A DNA stretch of 64,000 bases, from NCBI GenBank assembly GCA_001179505.1, contig CDMY01000376.1:186001-250000 (forward strand). Direction: 5' to 3'. Shown in pieces: positions 23,963 through 32,207 of the stretch. This DNA is from Vitrella brassicaformis CCMP3155. Lineage: Eukaryota > Protista > Chromerida. Position 1 is the stretch's first letter. The number at the start of each line of letters is the position of its first letter. Under the pieces are notes generated by a model that was not told the DNA's origin, made no database searches, and worked only from the letters and a program-made list of their open reading frames with translations. The position numbers and the translations under genes were made by a program.

Positions 23963-26900
23963 ATGCAGGCAACGAAGGCCAACGGCGAGGCATCCCGTCC
24001 TCGGGGCTCGTTCAACGCCCTCATCGACCGCATGTACGTCTTTTCATCGGCGTCGATGGCCAGCTTCGTCGCCCACATGCCCGCCTCCGACCCCCCATGC
24101 GACGAGTGCCGGCGGCGGCGCAGCGGCAACCCCTGCATCTGCCGCGAGGTCGACAAGGTGGGCAAGGCGGCGCCCTATGTGCTGGCCGAGGTCAAGGAGA
24201 GCAAGGAGCGGCTCAACGACACCAAGAGCAAGCTGGACGTGGTGGACCTTGAGCTGTGGAAGAAACACACACGCAAGACCGAGATGACCGGGGAGGTCGT
24301 CAATGAGTGCAGAAAGGTACGCACGGCAGATGGCATAGGGAGGTTGATACCAATAACACATTTCTGTGTGGGTGGACAGACACATTTCTGTGTGGTGTGT
24401 TGTGTTTGATGGATGGCAGAGGCTGGGGGATGGCGGGAGTGAGCCCGAGATGGTGACCCACGCGTGGTGCAAGATGTACGAGATGCTCTCCTGCTGCCAG
24501 CTCATTCCCGAATACGTCGCTAGCAAGGGAGCCGTCAACACAAGTAACCTAAGCAGGGGTGCTAAGCTACACAGCCGACATACACCTCCCTAAGCAGTCG
24601 ATTCACAATGCGCTTTGCAACTGCTTGGACGGTTTGTTTGGTTCGGTCAGTCCACCTGTGTGAGTGTCCGGGTGCGTTCATAGCAGCGACGAACCACTAC
24701 CTGAAGCAGGGGCAGCACGGGCGGCTGGCCCGCATCAAGTGGAACTGGCACGCCATCTCACTCAACCCTTACTGCGAAGGTCAGTCAGTCAGTCGGACAC
24801 ACAGACTCACACACAAACAGGCAGACACACGCACAGCTCACATGTGCGGGCGGGTTTGTGTGTCTGTCTGTCTGTCGGGTGGGGTCAGCCAACAATCTCA
24901 ACGCCATGATCGATGACGACGCCTTCTACAGGTGCGTGCGGACCGACCGGATCGACATGATCACATTCGTTCGCCATGGCTGTGTGTGTGTGTGTCAGGG
25001 AGACGTACCACTCGTGGCTCAAGGGGGCTGACGGCACCGGCAACATCATATCCAGAGGTAGGTATACACACTGACTTGACTGACACGCACACAGAGGCAG
25101 GCAATCAAGACCATCATCCCTGTGACGTGACAGAGAATATCGAGCACCTCTGGGACCACACGTCGCGGGCAAGACCACCTGCTACCACATTGGTCAGTCA
25201 GTCAGTCAGTCAGTCGGCCCACCACACAGCACAGCACAGCACAGCACACAAAGCGTCGTCATGATATATGTGTTTACCATGCCATGTGTGTCAGGCTGAT
25301 TTGGTGACGGCTGACGGGTCGGTGGACAGCCAGTGGGATGCCAACGAGCAGGAGTCCATCACGGCATCACTGCACTTCGCCGAGCTGGTGACGGCTTTGG
25401 GTGTGTTGGCTCCTGGCGGCAGCTTCGTCATCAAGCTTTTCACCCTCTTTGAGCACACCACACTGTCCATCGTCTTCTGCATAGCCGCTTTCTTCGAAGA
25501 GGTCAGTCAAGTCAACATACACTCAGACAGGGAGGGAGGGAGAGGGAGAGAGATCAGGTATGTGCCTCTGTGTGTCTGTGTGTGTGTGTGTGTGTGTTGG
25601 TGGGACAGGTGGCGATAGTGAAGCCGTCGATGTCCAAGTACGGCAACTCTGAGACCTACGCCATCGGCCTCAGATACAAGGGCATTCGATCCGTCTTTCT
25701 CAGACAACTCACACGGGGTGGACTGTCACATACACACACACCGATGCACCCGTACACACACACAGACACACCCCGTGTATGTATGTGTGTGTCGTTTGGT
25801 GTCCACCCATCAGCTGTGCGTGTGGATGGCTTTCTCGACACCGCCATCATCCCTCGCTCATGGATACCACAAGTGAGTCGCCAATCGACCCAACTCCNNN
25901 NNNNNNNNNNNNNNNNNNNNNNNNNNNNNNNNNNNNNNNNNNNNNNNNNNNNNNNNNNNNNNNNNNNNNNNNNNNNNNNNNNNNNNNNNNNNNNNNNNNN
26001 NNNNNNNNNNNNNNNNNNNNNNNNNNNNNNNNNNNNNNNNNNNNNNNNNNNNNNNNNNNNNNNNNNNNNNNNNNNNNNNNNNNNNNNNNNNNNNNNNNNN
26101 NNNNNNNNNNNNNNNNNNNNNNNNNNNNNNNNNNNNNNNNNNNNNNNNNNNNNNNNNNNNNNNNNNNNNNNNNNNNNNNNNNNNNNNNNNNNNNNNNCCT
26201 CTCACTCGCTGATGAGTGAGTGTCTGTCTGTCTGTCTGTCGTCATTCACCCACCGTACACGTAGGAGTTCTACGATCAGTACGTCGCGGCGGCCCGGCAG
26301 TTCGCACAGTGGCAGGAGCAAACCATCAAGAACAACCTCAAGTAGACAGACGGGCGAGGGATGGACGACACACAGACCCTCTGTGACCCTCTGTGTGTGT
26401 GTGTGTGTGCAGTATATGGAATGAGGGCGGTGTGCGTCAGAATGAGGAGCAGCAGCTGAGGGAGGCCAAGAGGAAATTCGCCTACATGTGGATGCAGAAA
26501 TTCAATATCATGTGCGCACAACACAACACGCACACACCGAAGCAAGACAAGCCGCACACCCAAGACACGCAAACTCTCTTCTGCTCTCCCTGCAGGCCGA
26601 TCTCTCCCAGCGATCGCATTGCGTACTGGGCTCAAGGCAAGCGTCTGACCGGCGCGCAGCCCAACACGACTCGCGAGAAGCCGCGGCAGAAGGTGCAGGG
26701 CCTGCAGCAGGACAGAATGGACCACAAACTGGCATATGACGACCTCCAAATCGCAAGAAAGGTCTGCCTGTAAGCCGCCCACCCACCCACCCGGTTTGTC
26801 TACTGTGTGTGTGTGTGTTGTGTTTGTGTGTGTGTGTGTTTGTTCAGAAGAAGTATGAGCGCCAGAGCAATGGCGCGTCGATGGGCGAGTTCTTCACGCT

Positions 26901-29900
26901 CGACTACCACCCGTCCAGCAGCAGCAGCAGCATCGGCAAGCGGCCCCGCGACGGCAGCAGCAGCAGCAGCCAGGACACCCCTGACAGCAACCCGGACAGC
27001 TCATCGCACGACAGCAAGAGGCAAAAGGTGGATGGTGTGAATGGCGTGTCGGGTGGTGGTGACGGCCCCAGCTACTCGGCGGCGGCTCGCAAGATGATGG
27101 CCAAGATGGGCCACCAGGAGGGTCAGGGGCTGGGAGTCGACGGCACCGGCATGGCTGACGCACTTGATGTACAAGGTGGGTCAGTGACCCACCTGCAGGC
27201 ACATGAGCGCCCTTGTACGTGCTTGTGTTGATGGAGGGATGGATGTGTGGGTGGATGGATGTGTGCAGCTCGGCAGGGCAGGAAGGGTCTCGGCGCAGAC
27301 CTGGTGGGTGCGCGGGCGGGTGGACAGACACATCAATCACATCAACCAGACAGAGCGGGGCTACCGTCGTGTTTATACCATCTATGTGTGAGTGCAGTCC
27401 TTCGAGAGGCCCAAGTGGTTCTCCCTCCTCGCCATGGACGATGGCACCTCCGACCTGTTTGGCGTAAGTCAGTCGTCAACACACACACACGCACTCACCC
27501 ACTGTAGAGGTGTGTGCCCTGGCTGCCCACACGCCTGCCAGTCTTTGCGCAAGGACCTCAACAGTCAGGAGTACCACAACTGGTGGGAGCAGTCCAAGCA
27601 AATGGGTGGGTACGCCACGCACGTCAGCCACACACAGACGAACAGACAGACAGACAGACAGAGACACACCGCCATGGCTCTGTCTGCCATCACTGCATGG
27701 GTGTTCTCTTCTTTCTCTGGCCTCACCAGCCCCCACGTCGCTGCAGCTGTCCAAATTCGCCACCGACCTAGAACCGTAACCAAGCACACAACCGACAAAC
27801 ACTCTCACCCGCACAAGCCGATAACACCGCTGTGCCCCTCTCTCTCCGTGTCCCATTTCTCCCATGCAATGCAGTCTGATCCGTGCGCGTCACGTGGCCC
27901 CCCTGACCCTCCCGCCCATGAGCATGGCCGACATGCTCATGAAGGAGTCGTCCCCCCCGCCAAACACACCCACAGTCGACACCGACTTCCCCCTCCCGCC
28001 ATACGGCGCCGCCGACCTGGCCTGCGTCCTGAGGGAACTCAAAACACGCAAGCAGCAACACACTAATGCCGTGAGTGAATGGGACGGCCCACGGATGGGA
28101 GGGCGGTATGGATGGATGGATGCAGGTCATCCACTCTCTCTCTCTCTCTCTCTCTGGGCGTCCATGCCATGGATGGATGCAGTCGTTTTCCTTTTGGCGG
28201 AGCTACCTGGATCTGAATCCGAGGGAGGGCTTTCCCACAGTGTGGCTGCTGAAGCGTCACGGGGCGACGGGCAGGGTGCTCTACCGCCTCCATGACGTAG
28301 ACGAGGACACCGTGCTCAAGCGGCTCAACGGGTACCAGGGTCTGGGGCGGGTGGAGGTTGCCAGGCGCGTGCACTACAGCACCTCCGCCTACAAGGCACT
28401 GCAGAAGGTGGGGTGGGAGAGATATATACACACCTGGGTGTTTTGATGAGTGGATGTGTTGTCTGTTCTGTGTTGTCTATTCTGTGTGTGTGGTGATATA
28501 ACAGATGGTTGAGGACGCCGGTGCGCGTCAGGAGTGTGACTTGGTGGTCATGGACGCGTGCGCCATGCTCTCCCACTGGCGGGAGGTGGCGCACACCGAA
28601 CTCATCGAACGACTTCTGCTCATCGCACCACTCGTGCAGGTACCTAGCATAGCATCCACAAACACACACACCCCCTCTCCCTCTCCCACTCCCCACCCAG
28701 ATGTGATGTGTCATGTGATGGTGCACGCAGGCCCTCAACGCGCTCAGGAGCAGCGGCGACCTGGTCATCCGCCTGAGGTCGACCGTCACACGCTTCACGG
28801 CCGGCCTGCTGCTCGTCCTCAGCTGTGGGTTCGCCGAGGTGGCCATCTACCGCCCACCCACTCTGCCGCATTGGACGTCCGAGAGATTTGTCATATGCCG
28901 CGACTACCAGACGGCCGGCTTCACGCAGATGGAGGCGGGGCTGTTCGTGCGATTCTTCGNNNNNNNNNNNNNNNNNNNNNNNNNNNNNNNNNNNNNNNNN
29001 NNNNNNNNNNNNNNNNNNNNNNNNNNNNNNNNNNNNNNNNNNNNNNNNNNNNNNNNNNNNNNNNNNNNNNNNNNNNNNNNNNNNNNNNNNNNNNNNNNNN
29101 NNNNNNNNNNNNNNNNNNNNNNNNNNNNNNNNNNNNNNNNNNNNNNNNNNNNNNNNNNNNNNNNNNNNNNNNNNNNNNNNNNNNNNNNNNNNNNNNNNNN
29201 NNNNNNNNNNNNNNNNNNNNNNNNNNNNNNNNNNNNNNNNNNNNNNNNNNNNNNNNNNNGTGTGTGTGTGATTGTGTGTTGATGATATGTATGGTGTGAT
29301 AATAGTGTTTGCGTGAGGCCATGTTCAAGGAGAAGCTCGGTGCGACGTTCATCCCTGAGGTCAGGCGGCTGAGCCAGCCAAGACACGCACAGACTGTCAT
29401 GCATCGCATCGCATCACACACACACGCCCCTCTCTATATCTCTCCTCCGCCCTTGTCGGTCGGTTCAGACCGTCCCGCCCCACTTCTACACAAAGAAGCC
29501 CTTCATCGAGTCAGTCAGCAGACCAGCAAACCACCACGTTGCCACGTCGCCTGTCCATGTCATGTCCCATGTGTTGTGTTGTGTTGTGTTGTGATGTGTT
29601 GTGTGTGCGCGTGTGCAGTTGGCTGATGGACGCCAACGACACCCTGATGGACCAGGAGGCCAAGGACATCAATGCGCACGGCACATCTTCGGCCACCAAG
29701 CACACCGCCGACCCCTCCCAGCCGTCGCCGCCCGCCACGTCGCCCTGGCGCGACGTGCCGGAGGACAAGCGCCGCGACGACTGCAACGACTTCCTCACAA
29801 ACGACATCCGACTTGACGGTGGGGACACACATAATGAGGGAGGGACGACAACAAACCGACCGCCTGTCTGTCGTTCCTTCGTCTCGCCTTCTGTCCCTAT

Positions 29901-30482
29901 GAATGAATGAATGAATGAATGCAGATTGGCTGCACCCTTCGGCCCCCTCTGTGCAGCCATCCCCCACCCCAGCAGCCAGGAAGCCTTCTCGCGCCAAGAG
30001 GCCGCCCGAGGAGTCTCCCGCCCTCCCCCCAACCCAGAAGCACGAGTTGCAGGCCGAGTTCAGTGACGACGAGGGCGACACGCCCAACAAGCGCCGTGTG
30101 GAGCGGCAGGACACCAATCAGCTGGAGGAGGGGCAGGGTGGTGGGGAGGATGGTGAAGGTGGGGAGGGTGATGAGGATGACAAGGGCGGCGAGCAGCATG
30201 ACGATGGAGACTTCGGTGTGGGTATTGGTGTGGATGACCATGGTGAGGAGGAGGAGGACATGGGGGTGGAGCCTGAGGAGCCGCAGTATGACGTGGAGGA
30301 CCAGGAGGACAACTACTTCGATGAGGTGAGACGGAACAAGCGTTGAGTATGCCCCGAGCGGATGGATGTGTATGTCTGGTGATGTGTATGTCTGGTGTTC
30401 GTTCACTGGCTTGGCTTAGGGCGATGATGCGAAGGGCTCCTCTGCCGCGGGCGATGCAGACGACCTACTCGCCGCGACTTGA
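23963..30482 (+). CDS. CMTR2: Cap-specific 2'-O-methyltransferase: CMTR2-type RrmJ/FtsJ domain + G-patch + degenerate CMTR1-like methyltransferase domain + acidic tail; last exon probably 30420-30482
   Basis: AWCKMYE, VHLCECPGAFIAATNHY, WNWHAISLNPY, ADLVTADGS, GGSFVIKLFTLFE, KPSMSKYGNSETY (K-D-K-E tetrad intact). G-patch ARKMMAKMGHQEGQGLG..QGRKGLG. Second domain ALNALRSSGDLVIR..TSERFVIC. Confidence 0.88.
25898..26197. other. Assembly gap (300 N) inside an intron of the cap methyltransferase
   Basis: The flanking exons (..WIPQ|EFYDQY..) join in frame, so no exon is obviously missing. Confidence 0.95.
28960..29259. other. Assembly gap (300 N) within the cap methyltransferase gene
   Basis: Run of exactly 300 N; an exon could be hidden here. 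Confidence 0.99.
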
Positions 30483-30956
30483 CAGACAGATGCATGTATG
30501 TCAAGACGCGGACGAACGTATGGCTGCCTGTGCCAGACAGGCAGCCAGTAAGGCCGTTTCGGTGTAGAGAAGAGTAGCAGGTGTGGTGTGTCTGCGGCGA
30601 GTGGCACTGATTGACCATTGTTCTCTGGTGGTGGCTTGACATCGATACATGAGCTTCACATCTCAGTCAGGACGGCACCCTCATCGCACAAAGGCTTGTT
30701 GCGGGGAGGGCACCGTCCTGGCCGACGACGAGAGGACGTGTCGACGAGTACAGGCCACAGCCGGCCGAGTCAGTCACTGTGTGTATGTATGTGTGTGCAT
30801 CACACACCCGATATACATACAGATCGAGACGAATGAATCAAGGACGGACATTTGTCAGTCAGTCAAATCTCCCGCCTGGCACCCAAGTCAAAGCGCCCTG
30901 TCTGCTGTGCTGTCTGCACCAGACAGCCCATCCATCAATTCTCCAACCCTCTACTC

Positions 30957-32142
30957 TCAACACGGCCCGTCACACCAGTCTGCTTGCCGCAATGCATTGA
31001 CTGTGGCTCGTGCACGCAGCGTGATGCCCAGCGAGGCATCTATGGGCGGCAGGAGGCCCGCGAAGCTCAGCCCGCAGAGGCTCATGTACGTGTGCAGCAG
31101 GTCCGGATGGCACCTGAACCAATCAGTTGATCAACCCATTTGCGAATGACAGACAGACAGACACTGCCTGCCCTGCTGGCCTTCTTGCTTACCCAGGCTC
31201 CCTTGCAAAGCCTCCCTTAGCATGTTCGCACTGCCTCAGAAAGGCCACGGTGCCCTCATGGGTCAGAAAGGCCTCCCCTCCCGTAAGAATCACAGCAGCC
31301 TGCACCCAGAACGAGTAACAGGCATCAGGCGGCTTGCCGACGCGGCCCTCTATCCCACTCATGGCACTCTGCCGCATCAACAGCCACTGCAACACACGCT
31401 CGCGGCCATCCAGGTCGGCCAATGAATCACCATGACAACAAAAACCATCCAGCAGGTTGGATAAGGCCGCGGTAGCGCAGTAGGTCGACCCCCCGTGTCC
31501 CTCCAGCCCCTCAGCCTGCCCGAAGCCGCCAAGGCGATTGAGTGAGCCCTCGATGAACCGCACCGTCTTGTGCACATCAAACACATCAGCCGGGCAGAGG
31601 CCTGCCAGCCGGCAGGATGCCGCTGCGCAATATACGAACCTCATGTCCGCATTCGCTTCTGTTGGAGAGAGAAATGGCCCGCCAGCAAAGCATCCGTTGG
31701 GCAGCTGCTGCTTCGCGATGAAGTGCGACAGCCTCTCACGATCCAGCCGCCTCATTCCATCACCCAGGATCGTCAGCGAAGCCAGTGCCGTGTAGGTGTT
31801 GGCCGTCGAGGGGAATGCATCGCCCGGCATACCGCAGAAGCCGCCCTGCGGTGCTGCAGACTGGCATGAGTAGATCCAGTCACAGATGGCGCGGTTTTGG
31901 TCACCATCTTGCTCCGGAAGGGCGTGCAGAAGATCAAGAGATCCAAGGATGAAGTAGAGCAGGGTCATGCGGTTGGATGCTTGGGTGGCATAGGCCGATG
32001 GGAGGTGGTGGAGAGCTGCCAGCAGGTGGTTGCGATGGGTCTTGAAGCGAAAGGCGCAGCCATGGTCAGGGCATGAGGATGCCATTGCACTGATCTCCGG
32101 CTTCGATGAGTCTGCGGGTATCATTTTGTCAGCATCTTCCAT
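30957..32142 (-). CDS. PGGT1B: Geranylgeranyltransferase type I beta subunit; long first exon plus a short last exon (about 31107-30957)
   Basis: HLPSAYATQASNRMTLLYFILGSLDLL, ADMRFVYCAAA, GLEGHGGSTYCATAAL, GRVGKPPDACYSFW, GGFAREPG|CHPDLLHTYMSLCGLS. These are prenyltransferase-beta repeats with a GGT1-type N-terminus. Confidence 0.88.
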
Positions 32143-32147
32143 GGCAA

Positions 32148-32207
32148 TCACCTCCGTCGGCGTACGCGGGCATGTCGCTCACTGATACACGTGTGCGCAC
32201 AAACACA

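Follow-up and report, generated by a model that had tools for sequence, protein, structure and literature searches.

In the window analysed here, a stretch of 64,000 nucleotides of contig CDMY01000376.1 from the chromerid Vitrella brassicaformis CCMP3155 (positions 186,001 to 250,000 of the forward strand), the coding region at 23963..30482 on the plus strand is one real transcribed gene, expressed as a single spliced mRNA. The gene encodes the Vitrella ortholog of the cap methyltransferase CMTR2, and we put the probability at roughly 80% that this one spliced gene combines an N-terminal catalytic domain, a G-patch that would recruit a helicase, and a degenerate C-terminal half of CMTR1 type. 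A first-pass annotation had regarded the same DNA as an active cap-2-type methyltransferase joined to a decayed cap-1 enzyme. The locus is an ordinary CMTR2 ortholog that has already been named as such, not a unique fusion.

The hand-built model comprises 26 exons and ~1190 aa. Exons 1-7 lie at 23963-24316, 24420-24543, 24651-24779, 24889-24931, 24999-25057, 25134-25192, and 25295-25501; exons 8-14 at 25609-25717, 25814-25872, 26265-26341, 26413-26511, 26596-26761, 26848-27175, and 27269-27303; exons 15-20 at 27398-27463, 27542-27605, 27730-27775, 27875-28070, 28183-28407, and 28505-28639; and exons 21-26 at 28731-28959 (plus 5 nt in the second assembly gap), 29306-29359, 29469-29509, 29619-29818, 29925-30325, and 30420-30482, all on the plus strand. 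All 25 introns are of the GT..AG type and the reading frame is continuous; the joined exons form a single open frame, with 936 codons before the second gap and 252 codons after it. The transcript was checked with Logan contigs from four public runs, which were aligned to 24550-30549. X7 (study P4, 2013) and X8 (study P2, 2015) each provided one long contig, of 3498 and 5617 letters, from which every intron was absent, and these contigs from two runs and two studies cross both assembly gaps as well as the junction 26761|26848. Because all introns were absent, whereas contigs of X6, which derives from the same sample as X8, keep introns, X7 and X8 were taken as cDNA.

Intron 12 (26762..26847, plus strand) links the CMTR2-type half to the exon that carries the linker and the G-patch (..QIARK|KKYERQ..), and it is the place where two adjacent genes might have been misjoined. 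A CMTR2-like gene could end at TAA 26771-26773, since a retained intron 12 would put this stop in frame 9 bases into the intron, and a gene for a G-patch/CMTR1-like pseudo-enzyme could start from an early ATG in exon 13 (..ASMGEFF..). Contigs can also fuse neighbouring transcripts, and the X8 contig extends ~1.9 kb past exon 25. The spacing of the pieces in X7 record 14 and X8 record 15 was compared with the exon sums of the model. The exon 7 and exon 13 pieces are 512 nt apart, an exact match with the model (510 nt for exons 8-12 plus 2), the exon 13 and exon 18 pieces are 213 nt apart, equal to the exon sum, and the exon 21 and exon 24 pieces are 100 nt apart (5+54+41). Since 598 nt would be expected on retention, intron 12 is spliced out in the X7 and X8 contigs, which bears out the in-frame splice and the single gene that the first-pass annotation had proposed. 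The junction 26761|26848 rests on X7 and X8; the X1 contigs cover the gene in fragments and bridge several junctions, this one not among them. Moreover, the same domain order is found in one polypeptide in dozens of species, including transcriptome-derived open reading frames (ORFs) and an uninterrupted ORF of 3.6 kb, and human CMTr2 requires both domains in one chain (PMC3941023). Two misjoined genes are therefore a most improbable explanation.

Both assembly gaps could be reconciled with the single gene. Gap 1 (25898-26197) falls within intron 9 (25873-26264); it starts 25 bases past the GTGAGT donor and ends 67 bases short of the TAG acceptor, and the joint 25872->26265 (GT..AG) is present in spliced contigs of X7, X8, and X1. 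As the spacing equals the exon sums, no exon is hidden in this gap. Gap 2 (28960-29259) starts within exon 21, of which it conceals the final 5 bases, and also covers the 5' part of intron 21. In the contigs, 28959 is followed by 'TGC' and then by 29304, and TGC together with AG at 29304-29305 makes up the 5 hidden exon bases, so that the reading across the gap, ..VRFF-VQ-CLREAM.., stays in frame.

A HMMER search with exon 7 against 1.84 billion representative proteins returned P0001, a protein of 1180 aa from Vitrella brassicaformis. P0001 is the same as the 1190-aa model apart from 10 residues missing at gap 2; it already joins both methyltransferase halves and carries the name CMTR2 in UniRef. 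The missing residues, AGLFVRFFVQ (28929-28959 plus gap 2), are supported by the spliced contigs and are absent from P0001, for which the annotators had to put a donor ahead of the assembly gap. The public model P0001 thus needs a 10-residue correction. P0001 was most similar to proteins that bear the name CMTR2 in Chromera, apicomplexans, and animals (E values of 1e-138 to 1e-68). Another protein, P0002 (4736 aa), gave 21 separate matches to the methyltransferase segment of exon 7, which points to a giant repeat protein or else to an error of assembly in the model.

The N-terminal Rossmann-fold 2'-O-methyltransferase domain (24453..25677, plus strand, exons 2-8) was recognized in P0001 by Pfam FtsJ at residues 130-348 (8e-26). 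Its tetrad is intact, with K136 (24471), D263 (25313), K303 (25433), and E340 (25651), and its S-adenosylmethionine (SAM) motif reads IHLCECPGAF. These residues and the motif line up with vertebrate CMTR2, in agreement with the earlier description of a CMTR2-like domain with K-D-K-E and SAM loop in place. A motif I with His in place of the usual Asp (HLCE.PGAF) is of CMTR2 type (PMC3113572). Like human CMTR2 (hMTr2/FTSJD1; adrift in Drosophila), the Vitrella protein has an N-terminal catalytic Rossmann domain with the K-D-K triad and the HLCE.PGAF SAM motif, and the two N-domains are 34-39% identical (E ~1e-68). These features support an active-looking domain of CMTR2 (adrift) type. The closest solved structure to the Vitrella N-domain is EP424R of African swine fever virus (9IQ4, 9W69), of which the solved chains have 418-426 aa. 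Against the Protein Data Bank (PDB), the N-domain profile scored 162 bits with EP424R, covering residues 56-409, 118 bits with CMTR1, and 47 bits with FTSJ1; exon 7 alone matched EP424R at 40 bits.

The G-patch that had been noticed on first inspection is real. It lies at 27082..27300 on the plus strand (residues 574-615), is split by intron 13 (27176-27268), and was detected in P0001 by Pfam PF01585 at residues 574-615 (2e-11, 44.1 bits against a gathering cut-off of 22); exon 13 alone matches PF01585 at 3e-8. G-patches are glycine-rich and follow the consensus hhxxxGaxxGxGhGxxxxG...GLG. The glycine pattern is complete in the Vitrella G-patch, which was aligned with that of CMTR1; at the three Leu positions common to DHX15-binding G-patches, it has Leu at two and Met at one. 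Directly upstream of the G-patch are the basic motifs KRPR and KRQK, for which we infer a likeness to a nuclear localisation signal. The segment FERPKWFS, once thought to be a CMTR1 hallmark, merely follows the G-patch and has no CMTR1 counterpart in any alignment; its reading as such a hallmark is thus unsupported.

The second Rossmann domain, which is CMTR1-like, occupies 27301..29718 on the plus strand together with its N-terminal extension and C-terminal helices (residues 616-1003, exons 14-24). The glycine loop of motif I has gone, as CAGPGGF of CMTR1 is replaced by NP-REGF (YLDLNPREGF, 28204-28233). No Lys is present at the position of CMTR1 K239 (G719 to D722, depending on the alignment), D364 and E441 are kept as D832 (28553) and E911 (28881), and K404 is replaced by Arg (R874, 28770). 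The tetrad therefore reads (G/D)-D-R-E instead of the catalytic K239-D364-K404-E441 of CMTR1, and the GxGxG loop is missing; judged by these residues, the C-domain is catalytically dead. In these respects the annotation was accurate: it had described a degenerate CMTR1-like domain with the SAM loop lost and the catalytic Lys changed to Arg, and the human CMTR1 motifs it had cited agree with the PDB sequence. PDB segments of CMTR1, including KPITSRPANSERYVVC, align with Vitrella YLDLNPREGF.., ELIERLLLIAPLVQALNALRSSGDLVIR, and RPPTLPHWTSERFVIC. As in human CMTR2, a non-catalytic Rossmann-like domain thus stands C-terminally in the same chain. The Vitrella C-domain keeps the Asp and Glu of the tetrad and has Arg at the second Lys, whereas vertebrate CMTR2 C-domains have Pro there.

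Structural comparison also points to CMTR1. Residues 615-993 were modelled with AlphaFold2 from an alignment with 30 relatives, and the confident model (pLDDT 80.9, pTM 0.86) has a Rossmann fold extended by helices at its N- and C-terminal ends. When this model was compared with the PDB by Foldseek, the top match was the catalytic domain of human CMTR1 (4N4A/4N48; E 5e-14, TM 0.62, ~380-390 aligned columns), followed by EP424R (E 2e-9, TM 0.52). The profile of the C-domain family gave 168 bits with CMTR1, 63 bits with FTSJ1, and 42 bits with EP424R, in which it matched residues 205-314 only, that is, the catalytic domain. Among single exons of the second domain compared with the PDB, the signal was sufficient only in exon 21, which matched human CMTR1 residues 391-450 (E 3e-5); exons 19 and 20, each alone, gave no meaningful match. 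Compared with human CMTR1 (hMTr1/FTSJD2/ISG95, the cap1 enzyme; 4N48, 8P4E), the C-half has the same order of G-patch, pre-methyltransferase extension, Rossmann domain, and C-terminal helices. It differs in that the tetrad and the GxGxG SAM loop are not intact and in that the CMTR1-like unit stands downstream of another, active-looking methyltransferase. Pfam reported only the FtsJ and G-patch families in P0001, and neither a guanylyltransferase-like nor a WW domain. A guanylyltransferase-like domain and a C-terminal WW domain are features of CMTR1, and they are missing from some protist CMTR1 proteins.

The three-part architecture is not confined to Vitrella. A G-patch at the same place, 120-280 residues past the catalytic domain, is present in 43 of the 253 CMTR2-type proteins that were fetched, and among the 150 best cluster representatives 45 are two-domain proteins, 22 of which contain the G-patch. 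Pfam gave the same order of methyltransferase, G-patch, and second domain in Chromera, Planoprotostelium, Adineta, and a pedinophyte. Source names add the green algae Trebouxia, Dunaliella, Gonium, Pleodorina, Volvox, and Ulva, as well as Rotaria, Didymodactylos, the fungus Jimgerdemannia, Paratrimastix, Gefionella, and Protostelium. The central G-patch thereby spans alveolates, green algae, Amoebozoa, bdelloid rotifers, a fungus, a metamonad, and a malawimonad, whereas vertebrate and apicomplexan CMTR2 proteins are without it. The orthologs that have it (Chromera velia, chlorophytes, Planoprotostelium, bdelloid rotifers, Jimgerdemannia, Paratrimastix, and Gefionella) share the architecture and vary in the decay of the second domain. 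This decay is graded: in most C-domains both motif I and the first Lys are missing, and Arg, or Pro in vertebrates, has replaced the second Lys, which Rotaria and Jimgerdemannia retain. In the metagenomic proteins P0016 and P0161, the second domain keeps K-D-K-E together with a CMTR1-type GGxGGF motif I. P0016 (L001:651-4280) is encoded by the uninterrupted 3.6-kb ORF mentioned above, and Pfam gave the order cold-shock domain, FtsJ, G-patch, and FtsJ. By their motifs, P0016 and P0161 are candidate single-chain enzymes in which both cap methyltransferase domains would be active.

In the survey, the metagenomic proteins of the P0016/P0161 type were found to have an N-terminal cold-shock domain ahead of the catalytic domain. 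P0041 and P0026 (Rotaria and Didymodactylos) have the CMTR2 architecture, yet their UniRef name is 'methyltransferase 1'; it is likely that the well-preserved second domain triggers the CMTR1 naming rule. A WW domain was present in metagenomic G-patch CMTR2 proteins, C-terminally in P0017 and N-terminally in P0021. The WW domain of human CMTR1 is a module that binds RNA polymerase II at its C-terminal domain, and as an additional trace of CMTR1 its occurrence here is anecdotal. P0173, a CMTR2 model of Branchiostoma floridae, contains one segment in several tandem copies and looks like an assembly or annotation artefact.

Werner et al. (2011) described two Rossmann domains in the hMTr2 family, the second of them degenerate, and mentioned the G-patch for hMTr1 only (PMC3113572). 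In the literature searched, including PMC3113572 and PMC9479742, we found no paper on a G-patch in CMTR2 or on a CMTR1 origin of the second domain. The central G-patch of CMTR2 is visible in public domain annotations and is thus unreported rather than undiscoverable.

If CMTR2 and a whole CMTR1 had been fused specifically in chromerids, a new helicase-coupled enzyme of cap modification would have resulted, and the C-half of the Vitrella protein would be unrelated to the second domain of ordinary CMTR2. Such an origin would fit the finding that human CMTR1 was the sole meaningful PDB match of exon 21, and human CMTR2 has been described without a G-patch (PMC3113572), in line with its absence, according to Pfam, from the primate CMTR2 P0211. 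CMTR2 N-domains, C-domains, and metazoan CMTR1 were compared over their shared core (81 rows, 154 columns) in an unrooted maximum-likelihood tree (LG+C20+F+G4), with no FTSJ1, FTSJ3, RlmE, or viral outgroup. It resolved an N-domain clan (support 100/100, stem 1.55), a C-domain clan (99/86, stem 0.26), and a clan of metazoan CMTR1 (95/96, stem 0.39). In the C-domain clan, the Vitrella sequence falls with Chromera, Cryptosporidium, Babesia, and Theileria, and the same clan contains the C-domains of vertebrates, including human CMTR2, molluscs, and sponges. The Vitrella N-domain groups with the same species as its C-domain, and Chromera is nearest in both domain trees. Since both domains are placed with the same species, the two-domain protein was vertically inherited. 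A central G-patch in at least six distant eukaryotic groups is likewise at odds with a chromerid-specific event, and we consider such a fusion hardly credible. The claim of a lineage-specific fusion or machine thus fails on the two observations that the first-pass annotation had itself named beforehand as decisive against it: the C-domain groups with ordinary CMTR2 C-domains, and the architecture is common across supergroups, in addition to the locus being named CMTR2. Its broader suggestion that the second domain arose from a fused CMTR1 is supported at the level of the family by the CMTR1-like profile and structure matches, and falls as an account of a special fusion in this gene.

The relation of the C-half to CMTR1 was examined with a profile of 20 sequences extending from the G-patch to the end. 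A database search with this G-patch-bearing profile (A2) retrieved mostly unrelated G-patch proteins and one CMTR1 (P0254), which served as the seed for the CMTR1 set. Against metazoan CMTR1, the C-half profile gave a single collinear match of 215-242 bits, whereas the N-domains of its own family reached only 42-53 bits. The match spans CMTR1 residues ~76-524 and runs through the G-patch, the pre-methyltransferase extension, the NRAAMKMA helix, motif I, the D/K/E motifs, and the C-terminal helices. P0001 alone gave two separate collinear matches with the CMTR1 hidden Markov model (HMM), the G-patch at 570-617 and the domain at 811-976. When the G-patch was removed and the sets were aligned separately, hhalign scored 334 for the pair of C-domain and CMTR1 (E 6e-46, 344 columns), 240 for N-domain and CMTR1, and 170 for C-domain and N-domain. 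The order was unchanged after the nine most CMTR1-like C-domains had been left out (234 for C-domain and CMTR1 versus 135 for C-domain and N-domain). Descent of the C-half from a CMTR1-type unit is favoured because the C-domain, which after loss of catalysis should have diverged furthest of the three, nevertheless stands closest to CMTR1, and because the C-half has the G-patch of CMTR1 in the right place. At the level of the family, the evidence is good that the G-patch and the C-domain represent a degenerate CMTR1-type unit.

Alternatively, the catalytic domain of CMTR2 could have been duplicated in tandem within the gene, with the G-patch inserted independently, and the likeness to CMTR1 would then result from fast evolution of the N-domain. 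The long stem of the N-domains (1.55) is consistent with accelerated change. A domain freed from catalysis would, however, be expected to have diverged most, and yet the pair of C-domain and CMTR1 is the closest of the three. Duplication also leaves aside that the CMTR1 match is collinear from the G-patch via the pre-methyltransferase extension to the C-terminal helices, that EP424R, an N-type structure, receives a lower score from the C profile (42 bits) than FTSJ1 does (63 bits), and that the second domains of P0016 and P0161 have full K-D-K-E and the CMTR1-type GGxGGF motif I. For these reasons, we regard duplication as unlikely and retain descent of the C-half from a CMTR1-type unit.

Several points weigh against our interpretation of the Vitrella gene. 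The tree is unrooted and its CMTR1 sequences are metazoan only, so that internal duplication with fast evolution of the N-domain may account for the topology. When only myzozoan sequences were used, hhalign was marginal for C-domain and CMTR1 over C-domain and N-domain (126 versus 109), and the CMTR1 HMM scored the Vitrella N-domain (58.7 bits) above the Vitrella C-domain (36.6 bits). With respect to the transcript, we infer from the contigs that X7 and X8 are cDNA, and the runs themselves carry no RNA record; a minor isoform that keeps intron 12 and ends at 26773 may also exist, as the contigs give no isoform proportions. Finally, catalysis, RNA binding, and helicase binding are predicted by homology only, for Vitrella as well as for all G-patch-bearing CMTR2 proteins.

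The C-terminal tail (29719..30482, plus strand) is of low complexity, Pro/Ser-rich and then acidic, and ends with the stop TGA at 30480-30482. Pfam reported no family in the tail of P0001, and residues 960-1180 were without relatives among the fetched proteins. The Vitrella protein is longer than human CMTR2 (1190 aa versus ~770 aa), with this long acidic tail as a further difference, besides the G-patch between the domains. The window has a G+C content of 58%, and the introns of the gene are short, with abundant TG and CA runs. Within 24317-30419, many introns have GTCAGTCAG-like donors and are CA-rich on the 5' side and TG-rich on the 3' side, with lengths of ~70-125 bases. Downstream, a convergent ORF on the minus strand (31189-32151) encodes a prenyltransferase alpha-alpha toroid domain (PF00432, 4e-69). 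With the X8 contig continuing beyond exon 25 of CMTR2 as described above, the 3' ends of CMTR2 and this prenyltransferase-type gene may overlap, or the two transcripts may have been merged in the assembly.

By analogy with known systems, the N-terminal adrift/EP424R-type domain would methylate a cap-adjacent nucleotide at its 2'-OH, with SAM as the methyl donor. The target of human CMTr2 is the second transcribed nucleotide. The C-terminal domain is predicted neither to bind SAM nor to catalyse, and would serve as an RNA- or cap-binding partner needed in the same chain, as in human CMTr2, which needs both domains and whose RNA binding and activity depend on the C-domain in cis (PMC3113572, PMC3941023). 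In the manner of its counterpart in human CMTR1, which binds the OB-fold of DHX15 (PMC6071836), the G-patch would recruit and activate a Prp43/DHX15-type DEAH-box helicase. The G-patch and the second domain would together be a degenerate CMTR1-type unit that has been part of CMTR2 since the common ancestor of many eukaryotic groups, and the G-patch would later have been lost in vertebrates and apicomplexans.

For the CMTR2 family as a whole, we propose that a fusion of an adrift/EP424R-type cap methyltransferase with a whole unit of CMTR1 type, G-patch and Rossmann domain together, preceded the divergence of the main eukaryotic groups. The CMTR1-type half would then have become, for the most part, a non-catalytic RNA platform, the G-patch forms would be helicase-coupled, and P0016 and P0161 may have two active domains. 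We see the chances of this wider proposal as evenly balanced. For the locus itself, the result is mostly deflationary, and the wider interest lies in the family: about half of the sampled two-domain CMTR2 clusters have a G-patch, which together with the 'mysterious' non-catalytic domain resembles a decayed CMTR1. If the proposal is true, the origin of the essential second domain of CMTR2 would be explained, P0016 and P0161 may represent a single-chain cap1-plus-cap2 enzyme, and many eukaryotes, among them the free-living relatives of the apicomplexan parasites, would couple cap2 methylation to a helicase.

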